From positions 1-51,209 of the forward strand of contig DF237564.1 of NCBI GenBank assembly GCA_000708835.1: a stretch of 51,209 bases of DNA, written 5' to 3'. Positions within the stretch are counted from its first letter, which is position 1; every line of letters starts with the position of its first letter. The notes beneath the pieces were generated by a model. That model was not told where the DNA came from, ran no database searches, and saw only the letters and a program-made list of their open reading frames with translations. This document shows, one piece after another, positions 7,820 to 48,260 of this stretch. A program made the translations under genes and the position numbers. Origin of the DNA: Klebsormidium nitens. Lineage: Eukaryota; Plantae; Klebsormidiophyceae.

Positions 7820-10319
7820 TCACCGGATGCGAAACATGGCTTTTCTGACCTTCAACACATGTCTGCACGTTAAGGAGAGCCGTGGGCCCAACCTAGGCAC
7901 AGTTTGAGGTAAGCTTTCGCCACCCAAAGACGGAAGAAAGCTTCTTTGCTCCACATCCAGGAATCCTGGAATTTCTAGCGCAGGCAGATTCACTACCTGC
8001 GGTGACAAGAATAGCAGGTTCATTGAAGCAGGCAGATTTTCCGTCGTAATATGAATCGCGCTTGGGGCATAAAGCCACTTCCCCTCACACAACGTTAAGC
8101 AGCGTAAAATCTGTCAACCATGAATGCAAACTGAACGAGACAACCGGCCTATAACATTCACGCCACAAAATCTTGACTAGACAGTCCAGATTCAAGTATC
8201 GAAACTCACCGTTCAAGACGAACACTTCCACGCTCTTTGCAGCGGATCAGAGCAAGGCGGAGCTTTGAACAAGAAAGAGAAAACAGCGGAGTAGTGCTCC
8301 GTCTTAATTGCGGGCTCACCGTTTCATCGATCTCGTGTTCCATACTCTCGTCGATGCCGTGCAAATGATCTGTAAGCCAAGAAACGCTTGCGAATCAACC
8401 TTACAAATAACAGTCCTCTAGGTCAGAGAATCAATCAGGAGAGCGTCCAGTTACGTTAAGTTGCAACAAACCACAGTAATAAGCTTTTTCAAGGACGTCG
8501 AGAATGAAGGCAAGCAAAGATTTTGAGCCTCACCAGGTCAACATCGCAACAACGCATGCTTACACCCGGACGAGTCCCTCCGCTTGTGCTGCCAAGCAAT
8601 CGCTATCAGCCGGTAAGAGTCTGCACGTTTCGGTGGGCCCAAACTTACCAGTATATGCCTCGTCTTTAAAGATGAGCAGGCTCCTTGGCATCAGCACAAC
8701 CGAGCAGTGAGATGGCTTGCGGGCCCCCGTAAACCCAAGCTGGTCCTCGAACTTCGAAAACACGCTTTTCCCGCTGTCAGCAGTGCCGTTCTGCATGACG
8801 TTAGCTGTCTGTCCTGTTTCCTGACATGACGCTTGAGCTGCGGCTGAACTGTCTGAATGACCACTCAAGCCGCTGGCTTCACTCGCGAGTGCATTGGCCG
8901 CTGTGTGTTCTTGACTAGAGCTGTGAGATGGTGAATCAACCGCACTGCTGAGATTCGTTCCTGGTTCTGTAGTTGCTTGAGAGTCATCCGGATGATGAGG
9001 GGAGGAGCTTTTGCGGGGCGTAAAGCGCATGACGGCTGGCGAGCCTAGGGACAGAATTGCAACGACGGGGTAGTACATAGGGCCGTCCTGGTGTGGCTGC
9101 ACGAAAGAGCACACTTCCGTTCAGCTCGATTTGGATGTGCAAGTGTTCAGTCTACTATAGAAGAGGACACCGCTTACTCTGACACACTACAGTAAGTACA
9201 AGCGTAAAGTGTCACCTGCGATCAAATCGGTTCGCTCCCCACCATGATCAATTGTACAAGGACCAGTGACAGCGGAGAGCGTGCTTTCTGGACGGTTTTG
9301 GATACTTGAATACTTGAAACACATGCTCTGAGAACTTGAAGACAGGAAAGAGATTTGCGTGCTCACCATGATGCCCTGCCCTGGAAGGTACTCGTTGATA
9401 AGGACGTGGTTCAGGGGGGAGGGGAACATGTCGGTCTTGGCAGCGATGCCAGTCAACACACCTTCTAGCCATTTGGGAACTGCACGTGGCAGTTTATAAG
9501 GATATGGAATGATCTTCTAGTTTCTGATATGCTTAGTAGTCATCTGGCAGATCCATTGCTGACCTATGTGGTCTGTTGAGCTTACCAGTCACTCTTTCTG
9601 GAACATGGTGACGCATTGACATCAGAGTTCACCAACTGTGTCCCTGAGATCGACCCCTTGTTGCACAAAAAGCCTAGTCAGCTTTTTCAACCTGAAGAAC
9701 CTGGTGAACAGAGTGATTTGTCTATGAGGCTAAGACGGGGACAGCAAGTGACTAAAACATAATACCAGGCTCTGTCCAGTATCTAACCCACCTGGTTCTG
9801 GAATCATGCCCTTCTCATGCACCATGCCACCTGTTGCCATGGACATAAGAGAGTGAGAGTAGGTGCCAGCCAGACAGAAGGAAAGAGCTTGCAGGCTGGT
9901 TGAACAAATGGAGTCATCAAAATCACGACAGAGGACTTGCTTGAGCAGTCTTATCACGCCAGCCAAAGTTCCACAGGTTCTGGACAAAGAGGATTTCTTC
10001 CCTTACCCCAGTACTGCAACCTTCTGCCTTTCAGCTCTCTCCACTTCGTTCGTGGTGCAGCGTGGATCTGCGCAGCTCAAAAGGAGAGGGAATCCATTAG
10101 CTCTCGCAAACCTTTGAGCCCCACTCGGCAGATATTTCGTTTCCCTTCCGCTACCAGAGCAACGAGATCTTCAAACAACTAAGAACACCCAACCTGTTTT
10201 TGCCATTTGACTCAAGCAATACAGCCCACCTGATCAATCAACTTCCGTTCTTGTTCAGCAGTGACAAAGTCAGGTATGTAGTAGACTGATGGAAGTTCCC
10301 CCACTTTAAAATTCTCCAT
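7820..10319 (-). CDS. ALKBH6: AlkB-family 2OG-Fe(II) dioxygenase, ALKBH6-like, about 325 aa, 7 exons
   Basis: Exons (minus) 10319-10230, 10067-10007, 9830-9792, 9479-9367, 9096-8649, 8369-8320, 7996-7820; phases consistent (978 nt). Motifs [39 protein letters not shown] (HxD), DHLHGI (distal His), RLSLTCR (2OG-binding Arg residues). The start codon could lie further upstream. Confidence 0.92.
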
Positions 10320-11218: not shown

Positions 11219-14200
11219 ATGGCGCGCTACCAGTTCTCCGACCACGCGGAGCTCCGGGCAGTTTCGCACATTGACATGGATTGCTTTTACGTGAGTGTTT
11301 GGCTTTTCAAACAACTGCGGGTCTTGGTGCTTGTGCTCAGTGACCTGCCAGTGGGAGAACTTGGGTCGCACTCAAGGTCGATCTTTCCATGCTGGATGTG
11401 GCTGGATGACTTTCAATTGCTCGTCGGAGTCTGTTCCCACAATTCTATGGCCGTGCCACTGTTTTTCAAAGTGGTCGTATCATAATGCATAACCCAAGTG
11501 CTCTGGACATGTAGCGGCTTTTTGAATAAGTACTGCGGCTATTGTTGCGATCCGCGGTGCTGTGCCTTCCTTACAGGTGCAAGTGGAGCAGCGAAGGAAC
11601 CCCGAGCTCAAGGGCAAGCCAACGGCGGTGGTGCAATACAACCCCTGGAAAGGGGGAGGGCTGATCGCTGTTGGATACGAAGCGCGTGCAAGAGGAGTGA
11701 AAAAGTAACTTCTCCACAATCCTTTTGGTCATTTTGTCAGTTCCGATTGTCAGCTCCTTTGGTTCAATATTTGGGTGCTGAAGTTGTTAGGATTTCACGA
11801 ACTTTGAATTCCTGGTGTGTTGACAACACTATCATTCCCCAGGTTCAAGTCCCCCCAGGTCCGTTCACCCAGCAACTCCCCCTGTTTATCCTTCCCAGCA
11901 GAGAGGATTTAACCACCTGAACTTGATACTCAGCCCTTCGTTCCAACCTTGTACTGAGAAGAGTCAGACACAGAAGCTCTGACGTTTTTGAAGAACCTCT
12001 TTGCAGGCAAATGCGCGGGGATGATGCCCGCGAACACTGCCCTGACATCAACCTTGTGACGGTGCCAACAGCTCATGGGAAAGCAGACCTGACCATCTAT
12101 CGTGAAGCCGGAGCAGAGGTAAAGGATCCTCAACCTGCATTTCAAGTCCGGCTCGTTGGTTCTATGAACCTGCATGATGAAACCGATGTTTCTCGGCTTC
12201 TGGCGAACTGTCCCATCAGCTGTCCCCCCATGACAGGTTGGCTGGGGGTTGGACAGCGCACGATGAGGAAGTCGTGCTAGCAATTCTCTTTGACAGCCTC
12301 TTTTGAACAGCATCTCAGTATTCAAGTACGATTGAGGAAGCCAACTTTGCTTACCAAAACCTTGCGGGCGTCTTCTTGAAGGACCTTGAATCGAGCGTTT
12401 GTTTGGCAAAACCGCAAGAAGGGAACAACTGTTCAATGTCGTTGACCAACGGCCTCTCGTGGTGGCAGGTGGTGAGTATCCTGTCAAGGAAGGGGCGCTG
12501 CGAGCGCGCTTCTATTGACGAGGTGTATCTGGACCTGACCGAGGCCGCAAAGGAGAGGATGGCGCACGTGCCAACAAATAGGGACGACCTTCATGCGGAA
12601 GCTCAGAAGAGCCACGTCCTGGGAGTAACGGTGAGTGTGCACGCAACATCTCAACCTGCGCTCTGAAGAAAGGCCGTTCCTCGACCAGGATTATTTGTTG
12701 AGGAGGCTGCAGAACAGGGAGGAGATTGAAGCGATGGGGTCATTCTCTGTGATGCACGACTGGAGGACTAAATCAGAGTCCTTTCGAAACTCGAAAAGCT
12801 CAACCTCTTAAATCGCGGGAAAGTGCAAAGCGGACTGTGGGTGCCATCTGTTGACCTGCAACGACAGCTGGCTCGTTTCTCTTTCTGCAATACTTTCACT
12901 ATTGTCGAAATCAGATTTGACTGAAGCGACTAACTTGAGAAGAGGACGTCAACTGTCAAGCAGTTGCTTCGACAGGCGTCCTCCCAACTTAGAGCACAAC
13001 AGATTCAAGACCCCTCTTCGCGGCCCGGCATCCGCAATGCCTCCTCGTGGCTCGAAGGCCTTCCTCCTTAACATCTGCTTCGAAGTGGAGCACGAACCAA
13101 AACCCCTCTCTGCAGCCCAACGTCTCCGACGCGTCCTCATGGCTCGTTTCTCGTACCGAGTACTCCGAGCAGCTGTTGGCCGCGGCCGCGCTGATTGTTG
13201 CGGAACTCCGAGAGGCCGTCCGCATGGAGGCGCGGTTCAGCTGCAGTGCGGGCGTCGCGCACAACAAGATGCTGGCCAAGCTGGCGAGCAACATGCACAA
13301 GCCGGCGCAGCAGACGCTGGTCCCGCTCGCGGCGGTGCCGGGGCTGTTCGAGGAGCTGCCGCTCAAGAAACTGTGAGGCGTGAGGCAGTCGTTGCGCTGG
13401 ACGAGTTTCCGGTTTGGCCATCGGTTTGGGAAGCAATCAAAGTGGTCGTTTGATCATCAGGAAGTGGGGCGTGATCGTTGATCGCGACGTTCTCAGAACG
13501 TAGCACTTACGATCGGAAAGTTGCTGGATGTCTCGTAACGAAAACGCGTTGCAAGTTGCCCTGTGACCGAGCAGTGCACCTGACGGGCTCATCCAACTTC
13601 TAAGGCCTGCATGACTGGTTGCAACCGCCCGCTGACTTTGCCTCCGTCTGATCACTTCCATACCCTCTCACTCATGAGAGCCGTTCAAATATGCTGAGGA
13701 TATTCGCCTCGTTTGCACCAGCTTCGGATTCTTCCGTTTCCCTGCGATGCTGACTGCGTCCTGTCGTCATGCAGACGTCAGCTGGGCGGGAAGCTGGGGG
13801 CGTCGTTGGAGAACCAGCTGGGGCTCAACACGGCGGGCGATCTGATGCGGGTGCCTCTGGAGAGGCTACAAGACATGCATGGTAAAAACGTCGGGTGAGG
13901 ACTATCAAAACACTTTTGAGCTCTAACTTTTGTGATTGCCTAAAATACTTCTTAGTGTGGGGAGCTGGCGCCGTTTCTATTCTGTTCAACCGATTGTTTT
14001 TGGTCCCTGGTCCACACGACATCTTTTGGTTACTTTCCTCCGGAGACAGATGTCGTCCGTCGCCGCAGAATCCTTTTTGATACCGAAACAAGGTAATGTT
14101 GCTCCTTCGACTGACGGTCTTGGCAGGTGGAACCCTCTCCCACGACGGACACTTCCGTCAACAGCCTTCCGAAGAGGTCTTGCTTTCTGTCCGGAAAGGC

Positions 14201-17954: not shown

Positions 17955-20900
17955 CTACATGGTCTGGCGCGCCTGCTTTCCCCGCGACTTCTTGAGCTGC
18001 CCCTCCTTGAGCAGCGCCTTCAGCTTCGCCTCCGCCTCGTGCACCGTCTCGCCCTTCCCCTGGAACGCCACCCACGCGCCCCGCGCCGCATTTTCCCGCG
18101 CCTCTAGTTCCGTCAGGTCCGCCTCCATCTGCTGCTTCAGCTCGTCCAGCTTCTCGTTGAACGCGCGGAACTCGGGGGACGCCTGTAGCGCCTCCTCTGC
18201 AGGAAAGTGCGATATCAAATCAAACGGGCGATGATGTTACTAAGACGTAAGAATCATGAAGTTCGACGGCTTGGCGGCTGCTCATCACCTCCTCTGCGGG
18301 AGGGTAGGCTTTCAGGAATAGGAGCGGCCGATGCTGACGTCACTATGACACGTGGTTATGAATTGAACGGGCTTGTCTCACAGGCGGCTGCTGCAGCGAA
18401 CCCTCTTCGCAAAAAGGGCGGATCTGACTTCTGGAGCAGCAGCACCGTCCTGCTGACGTTAGAAGAAGCAAAAACCTTATTGCTGGCCGCTCGCACAGAT
18501 TGCTATTGCGTCCAAATTTGTATGACGGGGTGAACCCACTGAGGCGATCGCACGCCTTTTCAGATTGGGCTGCTATTGCACCAAACAAAATTTCCTTAGG
18601 TCATCAGCACTGCCTTTCGAGACAATCGTCGATCCTGATTCAATTGCCCAGGAATGCCCGTCATGCAAGGAATAGGACTTCAAACTTTCCAAGATTGAAT
18701 TGTTGAACTCTGAGGACTTCGGACACAAAAGGCACACAATCCGCAAGGCGAATGATTGTGGCCCTCAAATCCTGCAGCTGCCAGTTTTCGCGTCCCGCAG
18801 ATCCCACCAGCATCTGAACCCGAACCAACAGACCTGAGCAACTTCTGACGACCCAAAATCTTGAGTGTCCTTCACAACGACGCCCCAAAACCGTCAGACT
18901 TACGCAGCGCAAAAACCGACATCTGTGAGCTTGATCTCTCGCACATTTTCTCCGGCACCTCGAGCCCAACCAATCTGAGCAGCTTCCTGCGAAACCCGTA
19001 ATATACCGAGCCATTCTCCACCTTATCGACACCCCCAGCCATTCTCCACCCTATCAACACCCCGATCCCCCAGAATTAGCATAAACCAGAGTTAACGGAA
19101 CCCAACCCACGCACCTGTGAGCTCCTCGTCCCGCGCGTCCAGCCCCAGCTTACGAGCCATGGTCAGCTTCTTGCGGCGCGCGTCGAGCGCGGCGGCCTTG
19201 AGCATGCCCACCGCGCGCTGCCGCTTGTCGAACCCCTTCTGGATGATCTCGCGCTTCATGATGCACTGCGGGCCGAACGTCGACTCCCACGCCATCGACG
19301 GGTGCAGCTTGTCGAGGGAGATGTTGTCGGGGGCGGGGACCAGAGCTGCGAAGAGGGTTGTGAGGGATCAGGTCCAAAATGGTTTGGTTTAGACTGTATG
19401 GAACGAAAGTGACCGCGAGTTTTGAGATTGGATTTGGAGAAGGTGGAGAAAGTTCGTTATAAATAAGGGTGCAGCTTCTTGAGGGACGTGCTGGTGTAAG
19501 CGGGCACCAGGGCCGTCAAGAGGTTTTTGAGATTCCGGAAAGGTTTGGATTCAGCAAATAAAAGGATCGAAGGGGATGAAGATGACGGAGAATCCTGGGT
19601 TGAGTATAACATTGGAAACATCTTTTAGTACGACGTCCGTGGATTCTGCGATCCGGGTACACTTGTCCGGACGGGCACGAAGGTGCATGGCACTTGGACC
19701 TTCTGATTGACAAGTTTCAGAGTCCGATACTCTGACGGTCTGACTGCAGCTCAGAAGGAAAATGAATCCGAAGCGAAGTCTCACACATTGGAGGATTCGA
19801 TTTAGGTGGGTTGACTTTCCAAGATTCCGAAGTTGTGAAACCTTACATATCCGTTGTCATTCATAATCATTTGAGGGCTGACCCACTGGGAACGGAACCG
19901 AAATACTCCGTAAACAACCGGGGCACGACGATCTGACCCAAGGGGGGGACCGAATGTTGTACGACCTGATGCCCTGATGCTACGTGTCTTCGATAATGCG
20001 AATATGCAATGCCGGCTCGAGTCGTTGAACAGCACAATCTGGCAGAAGAATTAAGCACTCAGGTTCCAAGCGCCTCACGAGAAAGATCAATGAGAGCTCG
20101 ACTTTCCGACTATCTCACCAAGAAGATCCTGCACGAGCTCTGCCGCGGTCTGGCACGCACCCTCGAGCGCTCACTTCTCCTGGTAAACCACTAAAACAGA
20201 CGTCACTTTCTGAATAATGTCAAAGCAATATTCCGGGCGGCTCACCGAGTGGCTGCTACACGAGCTGTGCCGCAGTATGGCACGCAGCTTCGAGCGCCCA
20301 CTTCTCCAGGTAAGCCATTACAAGAGACGTCACTTTCTGAATGAAGTCATAGCGAGGTTCCGAGCGGCTCACCGAGTAGGTCCTGCACGAGCTGTGCGGC
20401 GGTCTGGCGCGCGGCCTCGAGTGCCCACTTCTCCTGGTAGGTGTTTTAAAAAGACTTTACTTTCTAAACGACGTCAAAGCAAGGGTTCACATAATCTCAC
20501 CAAGTAGATCCTGCACGAGCTGTGCCGCCGTTTGGCGCGCGGCCTCGAGCGCCCACTTCTCCTGATAGACCACCTTGCGCTGCTCCTCTTGCGCCGCCTC
20601 GCGCTTCCGGCACGTTATCTCCACGTCCGCCATCCGCGAGCAATACTGCGTGCGCTTTGCCTCGAACGCCCTGGAAGACGAAATAGAACGAGTTTGCAAA
20701 GCGGGGTGGAAGGGTGCCGCACGTGCTTGCCACTTCCCTCTTTGCTCCTTCAAGCACGTGCTTGTTGCTGTTTTTGCCGTTGCTTTCTCGACGCACTGCA
20801 AAGGAATGAGTGTTGTGCGAAAGCATTGGAGAAGTTCGTGCAACGCAAGTGCCCTGATTGGCGTCCAGTCCTTTACGAATGCCGTGTCCAACCAAATCCA

Positions 20901-23003
20901 ATGTCGCAAGGTGCGCAAAAACCAGTCTACTATGAAGGCACGTCTTAGGACCAAGTCAGCCCTGTTAAAGGACATAAGCTGGGGTCTAAAAAGCTTCAGC
21001 GCTCATGCTTGGGTGGCTTCTTCAAGTGCGTCATGTACGGGACGTCGTTGGCGAAAAAACAGAGCAGGTCTTAGAACAGGGGAGGATCACCCCTGCGGTT
21101 TCGCTGACCTCATCCATGCATCCCGCCTGCTTTCCAGCACGCGCAGCTTCCGCTCCACCGCCGCGATCTCCGCCCTCTTCTTTGCCAGCACCGCATTCTC
21201 TTCCTCCTCCGGTAGCGCCTCCGCTGGAAAGAACCCGAGCGACTCGTCCAGTCCCCCCGCCCCCGGCTGGATCTCCGCCAGCCGCTCCCGGCCCGCCACT
21301 TGGCGATCATCCGGCGCATCTTCGAAGTGCCCCTCGTCGGCCATTGCTTCGGCTCCCCCGAAACCGCCCACGCCGTCGAACCCCGCTAGGTCCCCCAGCT
21401 CGGGCCTGTGGCTTTCGTTCAAATCGAAGCGAGGCTCAGGTTTTGGATTCGCAGAATCATTGGCCCCTTGCAAACCTCCGAAGTCAGGGTGACGAGCACC
21501 CCCTGCTAATTGTGGGCCTTCCGGTGTCGGCCCCGGTTCTTGGTCCGCAGCAAGACCGCCGTCTGTGCGGGGTTCGTCAGTTGGATTCCCCCCAGGTTGC
21601 GCCATTCCGCCCGCATCGTGTTCCGCAGCACCTGCGCCATCCATCTCCATTGGCACTGCCGCTCCTGAATTCGCCCCCGCATTCTCCTCCGCCGAAGTAT
21701 GCCCCACGTCCGGAGTTTCGAGACCATTTGCAGTTTCCGTTTTCGTGGGACCCCCATCCTGTTGCCCCGCTTCTGGCTCAGGGTGTGCCCCCCTCTCTCC
21801 GTGCAAACCCCCCTCGTTCCCCCCCTCCACGCTTCCGAGCCCGTTCATCTGCTTGTCATGCTCCATCAGGTGCTCCACCAGACTGTCGGCCACCTCCTTT
21901 GATGCCCCCTCGTCCTCCTCAGCCTCAGAATGCACTGACAATTCGGAGAGCGTCGGGGCGGTGTCAAAGGCCCGAGCCAGGAGCTCCCCCGGAGAGACCC
22001 GCTTGGTCTGCCTGGGGTTTTTGACGCCCTTCTTTCCGCTGGGGGGGTCCTTGCGCTTGGTCCCCCCTGGGGAGAGGCCGGTGTCGCGCTTGCTCGGGTT
22101 GATCGCTGCCCATTTGCTCTGGAAAAAGGTGGGGGGAGTGAGTCAAGGAGACAGTTTGACAGGGGTCTTGACGGTAGAGCAGAGATCAAGAGTGCACGGC
22201 CCTAGGCATAGTAGAGTGTTATGATTGTGTTAACAAAGTGAAGAGGTTATAACCAAAGTTGATGACTGGAGTGGTTGTGATAACTTCTGCACCCAAAAAG
22301 GTGGGTTTGTGCTTTCTGACAAATGAAATCCTTCCCTGAATCTTGGCAGGCTAGAGCAAGGCAAACATAGGAAGGGGATGAAACATATCAGTGACTGCAC
22401 CATCGATTGACCATGCTATCCATAAGGTGAAGCGTATTACCACTTCTTCTGTCTGGTATCAGTATACTTCTCTAGCTCTCTGCATTCAAGAAGGTTTCAG
22501 ACAACCCAAACACTGTCCTTGAAAAGTGCATTGCGGCGGACTGATCTTCTCGTTCCAGCTCGCAACGATCTAGAAGATACACCCCTTACAAATACACCAG
22601 AAGCAAGGTAATGCACGAAGCTTCGGCTTTCTGTTGCTAACAGCATAGCTCAAGCAGCAAATGCACCCTGAATCGTCAAGAATTCTAACCAATTGCATAC
22701 AGAAGGTAAGTTTCATCACCCCGTAAAGCCAATTGCCCGTGAATCAGAAATGGCAGCAGCCCAAAAGCAGCATTGCTATTTTAGCATTCGCAATTGTATT
22801 GTCATCGCTGAAGAGCTCACCTGGAGACTCCCAATGGGCCTCCACAATAGAGTGGCAAACTCTGGATCCTGCTTGAGGACTGTCCACCGATTCCCGTGCT
22901 TTTTGAGCGCCCTCTGTAATGCGTCTATCTCCGCTTCGGTCCATTGCACAGGCTTTGCCTTGACCTTGGGGGCATTGGCACCTCCACCATCAGCGGGCTC
23001 CAT
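17955..23003 (-). CDS. Divergent telobox/TRB-type single-Myb protein with acidic disordered linker and coiled-coil/helical C-terminal region, about 611 aa, 5 exons
   Basis: Exons (minus) 23003-22821, 22118-21109, 20670-20501, 19345-19115, 18196-17955; GT-AG with consistent phases (1836 nt). N-terminal WTEAEIDALQRALKKHGNRWTVLKQDPEFATLLWRPIGSLQ|SKW has the three Myb Trp residues and the DPEF motif typical of TRB/SMH Myb domains. No GH1 domain seen. Confidence 0.8.
19009..19064. repeat. 28-bp intronic tandem duplication (Myb-paralog intron 4)
   Basis: agccattctccacc(t/c)tatc(g/a)acacccc x2. Confidence 0.85.
20113..20570 (-). repeat. Four-copy tandem array (127-128 bp period) of exon-3 3' end plus donor plus intron start of the Myb-paralog gene
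   Basis: Cores at 20495-20570 (true exon end), 20367-20442, 20240-20315, 20113-20188, each like (t/g)ctcacc(a/g)agtagatcctgcacgagctgtgccgc...cgagcgcccacttctcctg on the plus strand. A possible partial fifth copy lies at about 20061-20086. Confidence 0.92.
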
Positions 23004-23468
23004 TCTTACTCAATCTACAATGATCTCTAAAGCACAATGCACTTCCTCTTTTCCAGATTGGCACCATCCGCCAGCTCTTGGATTTGAAGGTTTTCCTGAA
23101 CTCAAAGATTTGCTGCTGCCCCACCTTGAAGTTGAAGCAGCTCAGCTGTCAAACGACCTGGCCTGACAAACAGGCTGCACTCGACAAATAGCCGACCATG
23201 TGAACTTCTCTCAAAAGTCTGATGATTCTATCGGAGCCGTTCAGATTACTTATCGGACGCCACTTGTCGACTGATGGGGCCGGTGGTTTTGGAGCAGAGG
23301 CCGGTCGAAATCCACTAGGGAGTAAGGCACAGAGAAAGCCCGGTTCTCTAGATTTATAGAGCCCGGTAGCCCACTTGATGAGGGGGATGGCAAATTTCCA
23401 CTTGAATGTTGCGAAGCTAAATCATAAATCGTTGCAGTTCCCTAAAATTCTTAGTATTAAACAGGCAC

Positions 23469-23761
23469 GTCATCCTGCGCTTGGTCTAGCGGCTAAGGCG
23501 TAGGGATTTCCCCTTCACTGGGTGATGAAATGATGAAGTCAATGCCTGCGAGGGACCTGGGTTCGATCCCTCGCAAACGCACTACGGGTCATGCCGCGTG
23601 CGGGGTAAAAAGGGAGTATAATTCCTCGTAAGTCGAGGTCGTCGCCGCCTCCCAGGGGCCGCCGTGCGGTTTGGCACCCGCGCTCCGGCGACCATCGCCA
23701 GGTATAGGAGTCCCACGTCTCCAGCTGATGAGCGTGGTGTCCTCAGATTGTTCATCCTTTT
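23469..23761 (+). mobile_element. tRNA-derived SINE-like retroposon (293 bp, T-tailed) with 18-bp target-site duplication
   Basis: Flanked by a perfect direct repeat TTAGTATTAAACAGGCAC (23451-23468 and 23762-23779). Pol III A box TGGTCTAGCGG (23482-23492) and B box GGTTCGATCCC (23559-23569). Acceptor-like strands GCGCTTG/CAAACGC-A and D-stem GTCT/AGGC. The first run of 4 or more T is at the 3' end (23758-23763). Confidence 0.8.
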
Positions 23762-24203
23762 TTAGTATTAAACAGGCACAAAAAGAAACTTGGTGGCAGG
23801 AAAACTTCGAAAAGCAGTGCCCACAGCAGGAACAAAGTCTGAGCAGGAGCGCAGCAAGTTGGTCTTCTGGAGGTCCCACAGTGAAAGGAATTGTGCGACC
23901 CTCTTCAGATTCTTGCTCTGTTTAGAAGCCTTGCAAAGTTGTATATTCAAGGGCGGAAGGTGTGGAGGGCGGCACATCAGTTGCCGATGCATTCTTGACA
24001 AGACAGCGCAGTGTCAATGAAGCTGGGGCTAGAAGATTTGTTTACGCAAGTGGCGCTACCTGCTATTGCTGATTTCAGGTCTCATTAAAGATAATGCAAT
24101 CCAAAGTCTATTATGTATTCTGAGCAACTTGTCGTCCTTCCATGGTAGAAGCCCTCACTTGATTGGTTCTTGGATTAAACTATACAAATTTGGGCTCAAT
24201 CCA

Positions 24204-27200
24204 ATGGGAGCTCCTAAGCAGAAATGGACAGAGGAAGAGGAGGTCGCGCTCCGAAAGGGTGTGGAGAGGTATGGGCCTGGCAAGTGGAGGGCGATCCAGA
24301 AAGACCCCAAGTATGGGCCATTTCTGACGCAGCGCTCCAATGTGGACTTGAAGGTGAGAATTCAAATAGTACTGCATGCCAACCTCACAGTCTGCGAGGA
24401 TGTTCATCTCTCGCCCTTGTTAGGGTTAGGTTTTCCAAGGGCAATGTCTAGGGTTACAAGCTAGCCCAGCTTTTTCGTGCTCTCAGCTCTTGGGAGGTGC
24501 TGCAGAACTGTTTGGTCCGAAGGTGTTCCAATCACTGAAGATTCTTTTATCCAAATTTCCTATGTGAGCTTGGTCTCATTTACCACCTAGAGAACAGGAT
24601 GTCATAGCGTCTGTACCAACCCCTTTGCATGGCGTCGGGCCAATCTCTGCAAGAATGCTGTTTCCAAAGGCAGTTTCATGAAAAATGCGGCACATCCTGG
24701 GTTCCAACTGTGATTCGCTTGCTCTGAGATGAAGTAGAATGAATTTGACAATCATAGAGATTGGGCTTCAGCAGTGTTTGCTGGATGTGCTTTCAGGGAC
24801 TGCTAGATGTGGTGTTGGATGTGAAATTAGGGTTTGTTTGCAGTGGCTTCTATCCTTGCTGTTGGCTAATAAACCATGCATGGTCCTTTCAGTGTGGACT
24901 TAACCAAGAAGTAGGTATTCTTATTAAGTGTCTGAACGTCTTTGTAAGAATCTGTTCATTTACGATGCAAATTCTGGTCAATGCCACGTTTGCAGCTAAC
25001 GACCGTTTAGCCACAGGTATGCTTCTGTTCATAGATGTCTGGCAAGAGTGCAAGCACTCGCAGTTTGTCTGGCTTGAAAGAAGAGTCACAATAGCATCTG
25101 TATAGGCATGTTCATTCAACAACCAACTCTGGGCCAATTCCTGCAGGACAAGTGGCGCATCATGAGTCGGGCAGAAGGAGAGCCCCCTCGGTCTCGGAAG
25201 ATGAATCAGGGGACAAGCTCACGCCCGGCCAAGCGTGCCGCCAGCACAGGCAGCGAGGATGATGAGGAGGCGGCAAGGAAGAAAAAGCGGAGGGATATCT
25301 TCCTCAAGTATGCACTCGTTTCCTTTCTGCTACTTCTACGCTTTGTGCTGTGCCAACTGGCTGCTCAGTTGCCCCACTTGTTCAGAGTGTATGCCGTGGA
25401 AAATATAGTTTATGGACGTTTGTGTATACAAGCATCAACAGACGGGAAGAATCAACATATGTTTTCCCAAGCTGACATAATGCATGTTTGTAGAGGACCA
25501 GACGCAAGGGCACTGGAGCAAGGGAAGCTTGGCAAGCACTGCGGAGTGCTCACATGCTGTTTTCGCTTTCCCATCGGCACCTCAATTGTTGCAGTGACGT
25601 CAAGAGATTTGTGGTCAAATAGGATTTTGGTTGGTAGAGCGATGCCTTCAAGTTCAGCGAAGCAAGCTCTTCCGTCCAAGGAGCGCCGTGTTTCCTCCCA
25701 AGGAGTGACACCTTTCGGTTCTAATTTACGTGCCCCGTTGATGCAGGTATGGTGAGATGATCACAGAAGCTGTGGCTGCGCTGAAGGAGAAGAGCGGCTC
25801 CTCATTGACGAGCATAGCAAAGTACATCGAGGTGAGACAAGCAGCAAGGAAATCAAGTAATTGGCACTTGTAACCAGTGCAAAGTGCAGACTTCTTGATC
25901 GAGAGAAATCTGGCCTTGTGGGTGCTGTCAGAATTCTCATTCATTTTTGCCTTTTCTCAAAGGTTTCGTTCTGTGATTCTTTCCAAAGCTTGGCCCCGGT
26001 GGTTGTTGACATCGAGCATGCTACAACATTGCGTTACTCTGTCTCATGCTGACTTGCTTTTGCAGGACAATCATGCTGTGCCGTTCAACTTCCGGCGACT
26101 CATTGGGGGGAGGCTGAAGACGATGGTGGAGGAAGGGATGCTTATTAAGGTGAAGAGACAGTTTCAAGTTTACACTTCTTGCAACTTCGACTTGCCTTGT
26201 ATACCCGTCTCTCTTATTGACAGCTTGCCGTCTGCATAGCTAGGTTGTAAAGAGAGTCTGGAGGTACTTTCACGAACTGAAAGTATCCTGTATGGCTTGT
26301 AATTAAGACAACCGCATACAGAGCATGTGAGTAGAGGATGTTGAAGAGAAAATTTGAGAAAAGCAACGACCAAACCGTGGCGATAATACCGTTTCTTTTC
26401 GGTCCAAGAGAAGTCAGACACGCTTTGGAGATTCAAGCAGGATTAGCTGCATCAATGCAATCTGTGCTGACCCTCAAGCGGTCAGGCTGCATAAAACAAG
26501 GTCATCCTTAACCCCAATGGTTCGCTGGCTCCCAGGGTCGGGGCCAGGCGTACCGCCTGAACGACGGGACCGCGACCGAGAGCTTCGAGAAGCCGGTCAA
26601 GGCGAAGACGCCCCGGACGAAAACGGACAGCGAACGGAGCCGCAGCAAGCTAGAGTTAGGGCCGGACGGGAACCGCCGCCAGAAGACGGCAGAAGAAGCG
26701 GCCAAGGCGGCGGCGCTCGCCATAGCCGAGGCGGAAGCAGCAGCAGAGGCGGCAGAGCAGGTGGGGAATGTTGGGCTGGGTATCGCTAATTGTCCCGAAA
26801 ATGACGTGTTGGTGGCTGTTTATCGTGTGCAGCACTGCGAATTTTGGTTCTGGTGGTTAAAATCCTTTTGCTGGCCTTCGGCCTTGAGTTCGTTGTATGC
26901 TTACGGTGTGGCCACTCGACGGTAGTAAGCTTGCAGAAGGTTGTTCCTAGAAGGACCTTTCACAAGATCGGGGTTGCCGAAGGTGTCAGGATGTCGTGAG
27001 GTGTTCATTGTCGGTCTTTTCGACTCAAGCATATAGAGGGTGTTAGATAGTTACTGCTTGACAGAGAGTGCGCCTTTGATACGGCGGAACCATGACATTT
27101 GCACATGTAAAATCCTCCAACTTCGGGAGTCGTTAACACGAATTCAGTTGACCGACTCCTGGCGGTCAATCGAAGAGAAGAACAAGGTTCGAATAACAAG

Positions 27201-28733
27201 GAGACTCTCTCATCCTGTTGCAAAGTCGGCGCTTCCGGCTGCATCCTCATTTTCTGCCTTTCTTGCTGTCCGCTAGTCATGTTGTAAAATTGTTTCCCGC
27301 ATTTCCAGAGTCCCTTGTCCACGTTGTACGTTCTACCCATGCAGGCAATGCGTGAGGCGGAGCTAGCGGAGCAAGAGGCCGCCGAGGCGGAGGCCGCCGC
27401 CGAAGCCGCCGCCGCCGCCGTGCGCCCCCCCAAGAAGCGGAGCCAAAAGGGTGTCGCGGCTTTGCAAGAAGCCGCAGAAGCCGAGGGCGAGCACGGGGGG
27501 ATCCCCGAGGGCTTGACGGCGCAGCTGTTAGGGGTGGACGCCGGTCCCCCTGGTGGTCTGAGGCCAACCGAGCAGCCGGCCGTGCATGCCGGAGGCTTTG
27601 ACGGGGGATGGGGCGCTGCTTTCTTAGCAGGGGATCCGGAGAGGGGGGTTCAGCAGGGGGAGGGGGTACCGCTGCCGGAGGGTCTGCCGCGGCCGGAGGG
27701 TTTGGTGCGGCAAGAAGGTCTAGCGGGACCGGAGGGATTGGCACGGCCTGAGGGCTTTGTGCGGCCAGAAGGGTTAACGCGGCCCGAGGGTTTGTCGCAT
27801 CCGGAAGGTTTGGTTCGACCGGAGGGTTTGGTTCGACCGGAGGGTTTAGTTGCGCAGGGAGACAGCTTTGGGGCCTTGATGGGACTGTCTTCGGGCCAAG
27901 CGCTTGAGCTACCGAGAGATTTGCGGGAGCCGGAAGGGGCGGGGTTGTTGCCACTACAAAGACCAGAGGGTCATCCTGAGGGTTTGACCAACCAGAGGAC
28001 AGGATCAGGGAGCGTGGGGCAGCAAAGAGTGATGCCACCTCCTATATCACGGGGTTCGGAGCCTGCGGAAAGTGTGGCGGAGTTTGGACGTCCGAATGGA
28101 GCTGGGCAGTCCCAGGGGCTGATGGGGTTGCTCCAGGATCCAAGTCCGTCACGAGATCCAGGGGTCTCTCAGGGTTTTGCAATTTCGCACGATTTGCAGC
28201 CCGCTGAGGGTCTCATGCCGCCCCAAGTTTGTGAACCGCCCCCGCCCCAAGGCTTGCAGAATCCACAGGGTTTGAGTGTTCCCCAGGGGCTGCAGCGGCC
28301 AGAAGGGCTAGTACGGCCTGAGCCGCTTCCAACTTTGGACCGGCCTCAGGGCGGGCATGCGCCACAAGCGGGCGTTTCGCAAGGGGTGGAGCAAGTACCG
28401 GGCATAAAAATGCAACAAGGGAGCGCGCCACCGACGGGGCCGGATCCGGCTGCGAGCGCGCCAAGAGCGAGGGATCTGGCGGCGCCACTGGCAACCGGGA
28501 CGCAGAATCCGGACGGCCTCCCGGAACCAAACATGCGGGTACAGGTGGGGGTGCCGAGTGAGCTCCCTCCAGCAACCAATGGTCCAAGCGACGTCGTGGA
28601 AAAGCGTTCGGGTCCTGCTGTAGATGGGGTTCCCGTACCAACAGAAGCCATTGACCCAGTGGTGCCTATGGAGGTTGATGTTCCCGCAGACGCTGAAGAG
28701 GTGAGCGGGGAGACAGGTCTTGCAAAGAGTTGA
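24204..28733 (+). CDS. TRB: Telomere repeat-binding factor (TRB/SMH: telobox Myb - GH1 linker-histone domain - coiled coil) with long C-terminal extension, about 697 aa, 6 exons
   Basis: Exons 24204-24353, 25147-25307, 25747-25831, 26066-26149, 26536-26760, 27345-28733; phases consistent (2094 nt). [28 protein letters not shown]...RSNVDLK|DKWR; GH1 [28 protein letters not shown]...[13 protein letters not shown]; coiled coil [42 protein letters not shown]. Confidence 0.93.
24420..24835. promoter_or_regulatory. Telo-box-like motifs in TRB intron 1
   Basis: TTAGGGTTAGG (from 24420), TAGGGTTA (24449-24456), TAGGGTTT (24828-24835; reverse complement of telo-box AAACCCTA). Confidence 0.3.
27675..27854 (+). 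repeat. Coding 18-bp tandem repeat, 10 copies of hexapeptide (P/Q)EG(L/F)xx in the TRB C-terminal extension
   Basis: [61 protein letters not shown] second cluster ([24 protein letters not shown]) lies at about 28245-28316. Confidence 0.9.
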
Positions 28734-47368: not shown

Positions 47369-48260
47369 GTGACTCTGACAGTGGTTACGGGCTGTGGTTA
47401 GGAAAGTGACAGTGACGCTGACATGGTGACATTGACATTGACATTGACAGTGACAGTGACCGGGGCTCTCAGGTGACATTAGGGTTATGTTGCAAACCTG
47501 TAACGGTTTGTGGCAATCGACTAGCGTTATGTTAGGGTTACGTCATTTCCAAGTGACATTAGGGTTACTCACTGACAGTGACAACCGGGCAGAGTACTTT
47601 TGGTTTAGGGTATGTAGCCACTTCCTCTGACCCTGTCCCCATCTGTACCGGAGGCCGTACCGCAAACTGTACGGTAAATCTGACAACTCTGACGGAGTTC
47701 TGATCGAAGGACCTGATCTGACACTTTAATCCACGCGTACACCTTCAGAGCCAATGATCCCGCGTGCGAAGTATTTTCCACACTTTTTGAAGTCTGAGAC
47801 ACTAATAAAAGGAGAATGCTTTCAACTTTGTCGTACTTGCGCCAGTGGCGCAAGAGGCACAAAGTTGCTGAATAAATTTTGGTAGAATCGGACGCGGTAC
47901 TCGACGGTTCGGACGTGGTCGGACACTCAAACCTGGTCGGGTAGCCTCGAAGCACACTAAAAACCTAACACCAATGGCTCTGCCGTTAGTGGGAACCCTA
48001 ATCGTAGAGCAGTCACAGGGAAGGAATGTAACCCTAACAAACCGTCACAGGGAAGGGGCGTAACCCTAACACACAGTCAGTGCTTTGTGACTTGACCCTA
48101 AGGCTAGTACGAGTGCCCGGTTGACTTCGTGGTACTAGGTCCGGTCCTCGTACAAATTCCTGACGGTGGGTACCGTTCCGGTCGATCGACGGTCTCGATC
48201 GTCCGTCTCCAACTCTACCAAAATTTATTCGGGAACTTTGTCCGTTTTGCGTCAGTGGCC
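47369..48260. mobile_element. Foldback/MITE-like non-autonomous element relic with inverted arms and telo-box-like motifs
   Basis: Left arm: GTGACA/TGACAT hexamer run and TTAGGGTTA x3 (47479, 47532, 47559). Right arm: GTCACAGGGAAGG-NNN-GTAACCCTAAC x2 and AACCCTAA (47994-48070). Inverted pairs caaccgggca..gtac (47582-47597) with gtac..tgcccggttg (48107-48123), and 47845-47886 with about 48215-48258. No coding capacity recognised. Confidence 0.5.

Follow-up and report, generated by a model that had tools for sequence, protein, structure and literature searches.

The 51,209-base window of Klebsormidium nitens DNA analyzed here (contig DF237564.1) contains two genes that diverge head to head, the TRB gene on the plus strand and a second Myb gene, referred to here as the partner, on the minus strand. 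The partner is a real, lineage-restricted Myb gene of the TRF/TRB class and plausibly an old partial duplicate of TRB. To the complete reading, that the locus comprises two real divergent genes, that the partner came from an old partial TRB duplication, and that its telobox reading has probably been lost, we give an even chance. In plants, TRB proteins connect telomeres and telo-box promoters with the recruitment of Polycomb (PRC2), and active research is tracing their early history (PMC10167121, PMC12616469). New here are the head-to-head pair conserved in Klebsormidium-like algae, the universal TRB intron, and the restricted distribution of the partner; K. nitens TRB has a conserved, expressed neighbor with the hallmark TRB intron and a degenerate recognition helix.

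The plus-strand gene is the canonical, previously published, single TRB of K. nitens (Myb, GH1, coiled coil). Its product is identical to GAQ90223.1 and has the N-terminal telobox Myb, the GH1 domain, and the Ala/Glu-rich coiled coil of TRB/SMH proteins. Exon 1 (24204 to 24353) runs from MGAPKQKW to RSNVDLK, encodes Myb helices 1 and 2 and the start of helix 3, and matches the Pfam Myb model PF00249 at 1.6e-8. The phase-0 intron 1 (24354 to 25146) falls between DLK and DKW with a canonical joint in transcript contigs, and exon 2 (25147 to 25307) supplies the end of the telobox helix (DKWRIM) and a basic/acidic linker; joints 24353/25147 and 25307/25747 are present in 4 runs. The GH1 (linker histone H1/H5) domain begins in exon 3 (25747 to 25831, from transcript joints; PF00538 Linker_histone at 1.8e-9), continues in exon 4 (26066 to 26149; joint 25831/26066), and ends in exon 5 (26536 to 26760), which also encodes a basic linker and the start of the coiled coil. 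The boundaries of exon 5 were set by reading frame, splice sites, and a loose contig end beyond 26150 that maps once, to 26537 to 26566; its 3' junction is predicted. Exon 6 (27345 to 28733) is likewise predicted, from an open reading frame at 27315 to 28733 with an AG acceptor at 27343 to 27344, and would contain the rest of the coiled coil, a long C-terminal extension that is rich in Pro, Glu, and Gly and has (R)PEGL-type repeats, and the stop codon, the exon 5/6 junction being supported by frame and canonical splice sites.

The partner on the minus strand is KFL_006150040 (P0001), a 611-aa protein annotated as "hypothetical protein," and our five-exon model is in frame over 1836 bases and the same as annotated P0001. 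Its layout is an N-terminal Myb, then an acidic disordered region, then a helical C terminus. Exon 1 (22821 to 23003) contains the ATG, the basic N-terminal arm, Myb helices 1 and 2, and the start of helix 3; it is identical to P0001 residues 1 to 61 and ends with SLQ in phase 0. Intron 1 (22119 to 22820, GT..AG on the minus strand, phase 0) separates SLQ from SKW, and its joint, 22118/22821, is present in 4 runs. Exon 2 (21109 to 22118; joints 22118/22821 and 20670/21109) extends from the end of helix 3 (SKWAAI) to the start of a long helix and includes a basic NLS-like stretch, a conserved ELLARAFD..LSELSVHSEAEE motif, and the long acidic disordered region. Exon 3 (20501 to 20670; P0001 residues 398 to 455), covered by contigs over 20501 to 20669, is a coiled-coil segment, exon 4 (19115 to 19345; residues 455 to 531) is the most conserved part of the protein, and exon 5 (17955 to 18196; residues 532 to 611) is helical and includes the stop codon; exons 4 and 5 match P0001 at 100% in tblastn, and the exon 3/4 and 4/5 junctions are supported by the annotated protein and by conservation. 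The C terminus, for which no family match was found, is predicted to be all helix (pLDDT above 90 for residues 386 to 456) and probably dimerizes. Repeat search found four tandem 127-base copies (20114 to 20622, minus strand) that extend from the 3' end of exon 3 across its donor site into the first part of intron 3. Copies 1 and 2 encode 22 identical residues, and the 7 base differences between them, counted by eye after a one-base shift, are all synonymous.

The ATGs of the partner (23003, minus strand) and TRB (24204, plus strand) are separated by exactly 1200 bases, and spliced transcripts exist for both genes, which bears out the head-to-head pair proposed in the first-pass annotation together with its gene ends (partner stop codon at 17955 to 17957, last TRB open reading frame to 28733). 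Both genes, and the intron that splits each Myb, are supported by transcript contigs from four runs, which belong to four studies; the run label RNA is a guess, but the contigs derive from RNA because their joints are spliced. It could be argued that the minus-strand model is non-functional (misannotated, pseudogenic, or a product of promoter-associated antisense transcription), since partner exon 2 is long, acidic, of low complexity, and without a Pfam domain. However, canonical splicing in contigs from four studies rules out that the minus strand is not transcribed, the intact five-exon frame equals the annotated 611-aa protein, all exons are conserved as coding in the related contig L002, and synonymous changes exceed the neutral prediction; splicing, exon conservation, and selection refute this explanation for practical purposes, and its probability is negligible.

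The shared spacer (23004 to 24203) contains both 5' UTRs and a presumed bidirectional promoter. Partner contigs extend into it to 23116 to 23175 (in run X5 to 23496), and the first bases of TRB contigs lie at 23733 to 23827. Like TRB, the partner would be expressed from this short promoter region. Of the co-regulated pair proposed earlier, the divergent arrangement and the expression of both genes stand, whereas co-regulation itself is presumed, the transcript contigs carrying neither strand nor level information. The spacer also holds a SINE-like insertion of 290 bases with a tRNA-like head (23469 to 23758, plus strand), flanked by a 21-base target-site duplication (23448 to 23468 and 23759 to 23779, 20/21 bases identical). 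It has very high depth, many unrelated loose contig ends start at 23467 to 23469 and 23754 to 23762, and ARAGORN and Rfam searches gave no match to it. The insertion is missing from L001 and L002, two further Klebsormidium-like contigs, and blastn found no similarity between the K. nitens spacer and theirs.

The two Myb domains share their N-terminal placement, an APK.K arm immediately ahead of the first Trp, and a DP(E/K)(F/Y) loop. They align with two 1-residue gaps (31% identity, 11/35), and the phase-0 introns that split them share one alignment column, both as stated in the first-pass annotation. Membership of the partner in a TRF/TRB-like class is upheld by its DPxF loop, its L..KW helix 3, and an hhalign probability of 96.7% (score 49.5) against the TRB Myb profile; probabilities of 96.7 to 98.1% against three TRF-like Myb profiles place it in the three-helix Myb/SANT fold, and the AF2 model of the domain has helices at 14 to 27, 31 to 34, and 48 to 58 (pLDDT 70.6). 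Partner exon 1 matches PF00249 at 2.8e-5 (24.6 bits against a cut-off of 24.4), the full-length protein falls under the cut-off (20.3 bits), and this generic model covers only helices 1 and 2; the land-plant TRB Myb HMM aligns the entire domain (23.2 bits, HMM positions 7 to 57). The SANT_DAMP1_like match (E 0.13) provides no sequence-level family assignment.

The recognition helix and the downstream domain differ from TRB in the way first described. Residues 55 to 65 of the partner read RPIGSLQSKWA in place of RSNVDLKDKWR in TRB, and no PF00538 match for GH1 was found on the partner exons or on full-length P0001. The motif (V/I)DLKDKWRN is kept in all TRBs examined; the partner has GSLQSKWAAI instead of this VDLKDKWRN-like telobox helix, and its orthologues have GSLQSKWAMI and KSLASKWLSL. 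The changes from V, K, D, and R in TRB to G, Q, S, and A, which vary between orthologues, affect positions that we take to be telobox reading from residue identities in TRF1/TRF2-DNA structures.

The head-to-head pair is kept in L001 and L002. Partner orthologues P0002 to P0005 are 33 to 70% identical, and further fragments were found in P0006 (exon 4) and P0008 (exon 5). Partner exon 2 is 70% identical in L001 and about 33 to 35% in L002, and exon 3 is 94 and 62% identical, respectively; exons 1 to 5 in L002 are 63, about 33, 62, 77, and 69% identical, every one conserved as coding. The TRB exon 1 protein is 100% identical in both contigs. Its codon changes relative to L002 are 24 synonymous and 0 nonsynonymous, against 20 synonymous and 23 nonsynonymous differences in partner exon 1, which is therefore constrained but evolving faster than TRB. 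Outside Klebsormidium-like sequences, no partner orthologue was found among 1.84 billion cluster representatives, and none was found beside 80 moss or vascular-plant TRB loci.

The intron survey covered TRB loci, and in 62/62 genomic ones, from Klebsormidium to vascular plants, GT directly follows DLK, whereas 20 cDNA-like TRB contigs run on uninterrupted into DKWRN. A phase-0 intron in helix 3 after the L-K codon is thus a TRB-family feature, which the partner shares, and since no genomic TRB locus examined lacks it, it is useful as a gene-structure marker for TRB-derived Mybs. One non-TRB TRF-like Myb relative was examined (L083); it is intronless and hence uninformative on intron position.

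By profile score, TRB is not the closest Myb of the partner. Protist and fungal TRF-like Mybs score higher (65.5 at 98.1% and 58.0 at 97.5%, versus 49.5 at 96.7% for TRB), with 37 to 40% identity, and the non-Klebsormidium Myb matches listed for the partner at E <= 1e-3 come from Myb-repeat proteins of protists or fungi, with no TRB among them. These repeats (P0015, P0017, and P0018 of the "SLKSKW" type; P0009 and P0013; P0012; P0021) share with the partner a short HG-x-W loop, the DPxF loop, and an SL(K/Q)SKW helix 3; the helix 1-2 loop of the partner is one residue shorter than, and unlike, the GPGKW loop of TRB, as in the "SLKSKW"-type Mybs. In a maximum-likelihood tree of 61 columns, built without TRFL, TRF, or TBP sequences, the partner falls outside the TRB clade and groups weakly (67/86) with these short-loop Mybs. 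The partner may accordingly be an independent TRF-like Myb that was never a TRB, brought beside TRB by rearrangement and kept there by the shared promoter, the shared intron either predating the two genes or arising by coincidence at an AG|G-type proto-splice site. We treat this explanation as a real possibility but lean against it. The position and phase of the intron are exactly the TRB hallmark, the Myb is N-terminal and, like that of TRB, follows an APK.K arm, the two genes have stayed paired in three taxa, and the architecture of the partner has no orthologue in other lineages among the representatives searched. Beyond the Myb, the protist and fungal proteins have nothing in common with the partner; they carry Ank, TPR, PHD, or HUN domains, usually have several non-N-terminal Myb repeats, and come from scattered sources (a diatom, a fungus, anonymous contigs). 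The tree grouping is weak, the AU test neither rejects nor demonstrates a TRB-plus-partner clade (p 0.229), and the higher scores of protist repeats may be due simply to a convergent loss of the additional residue in the loop.

The inverted duplication suggested in the first-pass annotation fits the intron position and the adjacency and is opposed by the tree and by the higher non-TRB profile scores; given the AU result and the placement outside the TRB clade, we infer it from adjacency and gene structure. In this scenario, an old duplication, partial and inverted, would have taken in the 5' module of TRB, from exon 1 through the phase-0 intron into the first part of exon 2, and the copy would then have joined unrelated downstream sequence. 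It is unlikely that the partner branched off close to where the TRB family arose, as was further suggested, because a 2025 study traced TRB to Chlorokybophyceae and found it across streptophyte algae (PMC12616469), whereas the partner is found only in Klebsormidium-like sequences.

The partner would be a nuclear protein of Klebsormidium-like algae; under the duplication reading, it retained the scaffold of three helices with the basic arm at the N terminus and lost the telobox-reading positions of helix 3. Judging from residue identities, telomere-repeat reading is probably gone, and the domain may more likely bind chromatin or proteins in the manner of SANT domains, or bind DNA with low specificity. 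Sequence-specific binding, to a variant telomere or telo-box or to a new motif, with or against TRB at shared targets, would be consistent with the positive net charge and basic N-terminal arm, the conservation of the three Trp-type core positions and of the Lys that precedes the last Trp, purifying selection on the domain, and the predicted three-helix fold. We consider it unlikely, however: the helix 3 surface varies among orthologues (Q/A, A/L, A/M/S), which is unusual for a base-reading helix, whereas the TRB helix is invariant, and a PDB search at E <= 10 gave no TRF1 or TRF2 match for the partner, whereas TRB exon 1 by itself matches the TRF2 Myb at 4.6e-6. The structural neighbors of the Myb model are SANT and TRF domains mixed and are not informative. 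The SANT co-regulators RERE, MTA3, DMAP1, and CoREST are top or near-top among them and resemble the partner in having no conserved base-reading helix 3, but these matches are weak (Foldseek E 0.24 or worse) and the partner domain, unlike theirs, is net basic with a basic N-terminal arm.

Compared with TRB/SMH proteins (AtTRB1-5, GAQ90223.1), the partner has a similar single N-terminal TRF-like Myb, with the DPxF loop and a basic arm preceding the first Trp, as well as the phase-0 intron between L(K/Q) and (D/S)KW and a helical C terminus, and its gene physically adjoins TRB. It differs in the absent GH1 domain and VDLKDKWRN telobox, the shorter helix 1-2 loop, the low Myb identity to its neighbor, about 300 residues of acidic disorder, and its restriction to Klebsormidium-like algae; between its C-terminal helices and the TRB coiled coil no homology was detected, on the basis of the absent family match. 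A more elaborate proposal, in which the pair forms a conserved Klebsormidiophyceae module with one bidirectional promoter and the TRB-derived partner, its telomere reading lost, acts as a TRB cofactor or antagonist that might dimerize via its helical C terminus and, at telo-box chromatin, compete for the partners of TRB or bridge them, is speculative and, in our judgment, quite improbable. If true, it would add a new lineage-specific regulator of the PRC2/telomere-recruiting TRB system. A TRB-derived partner would be a natural example of a Myb that once read telomeres and became a module that does not, with its gene still linked to the parental one; otherwise the two genes form an ordinary bidirectional pair. 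The partner is confined to one algal class and has no assigned function, which for now limits its wider importance.

TRB intron 1 contains three telo-box-like TAGGGTT motifs on the plus strand (starting at 24421, 24449, and 24828; span 24421 to 24834), and the whole window has 12 such motifs versus 3.3 expected, a count reached in 0/100 shuffles.

In the streptophyte alga Klebsormidium nitens, the present scaffold of 51,209 bases carries a TRB gene and a second Myb gene, here termed the partner, which diverge from start codons 1200 bases apart (24204 on the plus strand and 23003 on the minus strand, respectively). Both carry a phase-0 first intron at the same alignment column within the third Myb helix, between DLK and DKW in TRB and between SLQ and SKW in the partner. 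The first-pass annotation had described this layout from the sequence alone, and its coordinates and residue strings all proved correct. Contigs of four public runs from four studies were mapped onto 20500-26400; the RNA label of these runs was a guess, and it is the canonical spliced joints on both strands that indicate an origin from RNA. Both genes are represented in all four runs, with joints spanning 24354-25146, 25308-25746, and 25832-26065 in TRB (plus strand) and 22119-22820 (GT..AG) and 20671-21108 in the partner (minus strand); the divergent pair, the common intron, and transcription of the minus-strand model are thereby established.

The five-exon partner model (23003-22821, 22118-21109, 20670-20501, 19345-19115, and 18196-17955, minus strand) is in frame over 1836 bases and identical to the 611-residue protein P0001, which was retrieved when the exon 2 open frame served as query in a word search and is named "hypothetical protein KFL_006150040 [Klebsormidium nitens]" in NCBI and "Myb-like domain-containing protein" in UniRef. 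A pseudogene or artefact is ruled out by the canonical splicing in the contigs, the exon conservation, and the pattern of codon changes. The TRB gene is not new: it is the sole K. nitens TRB in published TRB phylogenies (PMC10167121, PMC12616469), and the N-terminal residues of GAQ90223.1 in the supplementary alignment of PMC12616469 exactly match those encoded by the plus-strand gene. A literature search on the partner locus tag found no paper, and the literature searched mentions neither the partner, nor the intron common to both genes, nor the conserved gene pair. For TRB, a six-exon model yields 697 residues, the exon 5/6 junction being a prediction only; the loose contig end past 26150 has a single mapping site, 26537. 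The last exon (27345-28733) adds about 460 Pro/Glu/Gly-rich residues with many (R)PEGL-type pentapeptide repeats, which accounts for the length of the protein compared with 263 to 350 residues in complete land-plant TRB transcripts from metagenome loci. Because of its low complexity, a word search with this exon returned zero matches.

The intron position is a universal hallmark of TRB genes. A scan of metagenome contigs with TRB exon 1 recovered 80 TRB loci (64 to 84% identical), apparently from mosses and vascular plants; when these were pooled with two Klebsormidium-like loci, GT directly followed the DLK codon in all 62 genomic loci, and the 20 cDNA-like contigs ran on into DKWRN without interruption. 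Since the partner has only four introns in 1833 coding bases, independent gain at the exact TRB site and phase is unlikely a priori, at a rough estimate of about 1% or a few percent that allows for proto-splice-site preference. The partner intron occupies the same position in two Klebsormidium-like contigs, L001 (Logan assembly) and L002 (JGI metagenome), whose partner exon 2 is 70% and about 35% identical to that of K. nitens, respectively. In both contigs, a TRB gene (Myb plus Linker_histone) is encoded on the other strand, at a distance of about 0.9 kb from the partner start codon, so the head-to-head layout is kept in related algae. The flanks of the 80 moss and vascular-plant TRB loci contained no partner-like sequence.

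In both genes the Myb domain is N-terminal and an APK.K arm immediately precedes its first tryptophan. Direct comparison gives 11 identities in 35 positions (31%) with two one-residue gaps inside the domain, just as first described. Pfam Myb_DNA-binding matches exon 1 of TRB at 1.6e-8 and that of the partner at 2.8e-5; Linker_histone matches TRB exon 3 at 1.8e-9 and has no match in the full-length partner, in keeping with the reported lack of GH1. The generic Pfam Myb model covers only helices 1 and 2 of the partner, whereas a hidden Markov model of land-plant TRB Mybs spans its full domain (23.2 bits), and hhalign aligns the partner and TRB profiles at 96.7% probability (score 49.5); by these profile comparisons the partner belongs to the TRF/TRB-like Myb class. 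However, hhalign scores are higher for a protist TPR-Myb class with a ...SLKSKW helix 3 (98.1%, 65.5) and for a second repeat class (97.5%, 58.0), both of which share with the partner a helix 1-2 loop shorter by one residue. In PDB searches, exon 1 of TRB by itself recovers the Myb of TRF2 at 4.6e-6 and that of TRF1 at about 1e-3, whereas the entire partner Myb yields only weak matches to c-Myb repeats (0.017), with TRF proteins absent at E ≤ 10. Foldseek of the Myb model returns a mixture of SANT and TRF domains, every match at E ≥ 0.24, and is not discriminating.

An IQ-TREE tree was built from 53 Myb domains (61 columns), comprising no TRFL, TRF, or TBP sequences because residues 95 to 152 of P0016, a telobox Myb used as word-search query for TRB and TRFL proteins, gave 2 matches only. 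In alignments, tree, and searches, K. nitens TRB was represented by exon 1 only and the partner by P0001, which equals the spliced model. Partner orthologues and TRBs form separate, well-supported clades; the partner groups outside TRB with the short-loop class, albeit weakly (67/86), and a clade uniting TRB and the partner is not rejected by the AU test (P = 0.229). The Myb closest to the partner in this tree, that of the P0021/P0028 cluster, served as an intron control; its gene (locus L083) is intronless and lies in a compact genome, and so has no bearing on the common intron position. Given the higher non-TRB scores, the weak placement, and the AU result, the sequence is compatible with descent from TRB without pointing to it.

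The inverted duplication first proposed is supported in part, by the site and phase of the intron, the N-terminal Myb, and the APK.K arm, whereas the tree and the hhalign comparisons do not mark TRB in particular as the parent. We give an even chance to an old inverted duplication restricted to the 5' module of TRB. That an unrelated TRF-like Myb gene later became the neighbour of TRB would suit the tree and profile scores, the coincident intron then being either older than both genes or a chance match; we consider it somewhat less likely. A recent inverted duplication is ruled out by the 31% identity and by a pairing older than the split from L002. With regard to age, a full HMMER search of 1.84 billion cluster representatives with P0001 as query returned no more than 20 matches at E ≤ 1e-3; those extending outside the Myb are Klebsormidium-like contig fragments only (P0003, P0006 to P0008, P0010, and P0011), and the remainder match the Myb alone within unrelated architectures (Ank, TPR, PHD, HUN) from scattered sources, among them a diatom and a fungus. 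On the present data, the partner is confined to Klebsormidium-like algae. TRB has been traced back to Chlorokybophyceae and is reported throughout the streptophyte algae (PMC12616469). The suggestion that the partner arose near the origin of TRB is therefore unlikely, and a lineage-specific derivative fits better. Overall, the initial observation is confirmed and its interpretation partly supported.

The two genes differ in constraint. Across K. nitens, L001, and L002, the residues encoded by TRB exon 1 are 100% identical. K. nitens and L002 differ in this exon by 24 synonymous and 0 nonsynonymous codon changes, whereas the 61 codons of partner exon 1 show 20 and 23, respectively; partner exon 1 is under constraint, yet evolving much faster than TRB exon 1. 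The partner exons, in order, encode the Myb (63% identity to L002), an acidic disordered region (about 33%), a coiled coil (62%), and a helical C terminus (77% in exon 4, 69% in exon 5), which makes the helical C terminus the best-conserved region. AF2 models this region entirely as helices, of which one is long (residues 386 to 456) and has pLDDT above 90. No fold or family match to the C terminus was found in Pfam, ESM Atlas (generic coiled-coil clusters only, scores ≤ 0.83), or Foldseek against the PDB (nothing at E ≤ 0.001). At the helix 3 positions that we take, from TRF-DNA structures, to contact DNA in TRF1, TRF2, and TRB (V, K, D, and R), the partner has G, Q, S, and A, and its orthologues vary (Q/A, A/L, A/M/S). 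Because these positions are replaced and variable, we infer that the partner Myb would no longer read telomere repeats; more likely, it would act as a SANT-like interaction module or a low-specificity DNA binder in a dimeric nuclear protein. The basic residues that follow the Myb resemble a nuclear localisation signal.

Two further features of the partner protein were noted. MAFFT placed exon 5 orthologues on exon 3, and P0001 residues 398 to 455 (20501-20670) and 532 to 590 (17955-18196) have the common pattern AF..K...M.DV...QEK..E..R...AQL; these helical exons may represent an internal duplication. Within a disordered exon that is otherwise about 35% identical, K. nitens, L001, and L002 share an almost unchanged short motif, ELLARAFD.APTLSELSVHSEAEE, at residues ~100 to 130 (~21730-21820), a candidate site of interaction or phosphorylation.

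A SINE-like insertion of 290 bases (23469-23758) lies between the two transcription units; its 5' head is tRNA-like, and a target-site duplication of 21 bases flanks it (within 23448-23779). Its very high depth and many unrelated flanks in transcript contigs mark it as a multi-copy, transcribed repeat, and neither L001 nor L002 has it in the orthologous spacer. No tRNA or RNA family was detected in the spacer or the element by ARAGORN or Rfam; blastn found no similarity between the K. nitens spacer and those of L001 and L002, and MAFFT aligned short blocks in the TRB 5' UTR only. Partner contigs extend to 23116-23175 (23496 in one run) and TRB contigs begin at 23733-23827. Since the untranscribed gap prior to the insertion was at most about 270 to 350 bases, a bidirectional promoter fits; co-regulation of the two genes is putative, as the contigs record the presence of transcripts but not their strand or level.

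Four tandem copies of a 127-base unit (20114-20622) run across the final 22 codons of partner exon 3, its donor site, and the beginning of intron 3. With 7 base differences, all synonymous, copy 2 (~20374-20440) codes for the same 22 residues, which suggests a possible alternative tail of exon 3; copies 3 and 4 contain stop codons. Transcript contigs end precisely at the exon 3 end (20501), and decayed copies are found at the same place in L002 (~11900-12060). Within about 400 bases of TRB intron 1 are three telo-box-like TAGGGTT motifs (24421, 24449, and 24828), a motif seen 12 times in the window versus 3.3 expected, and L002 has two motifs of this type immediately upstream of the TRB start codon (8450-8490); TRB may bind its own gene at these putative telo-boxes. 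At 47480-47566 and 47994-48068, preceded by GTGACA-type short repeats (47400-47470), are two clusters of three TTAGGGTTA-like motifs each, in inverted orientation about 430 bases apart, which look like transposon subterminal repeats or a telo-box-rich promoter.
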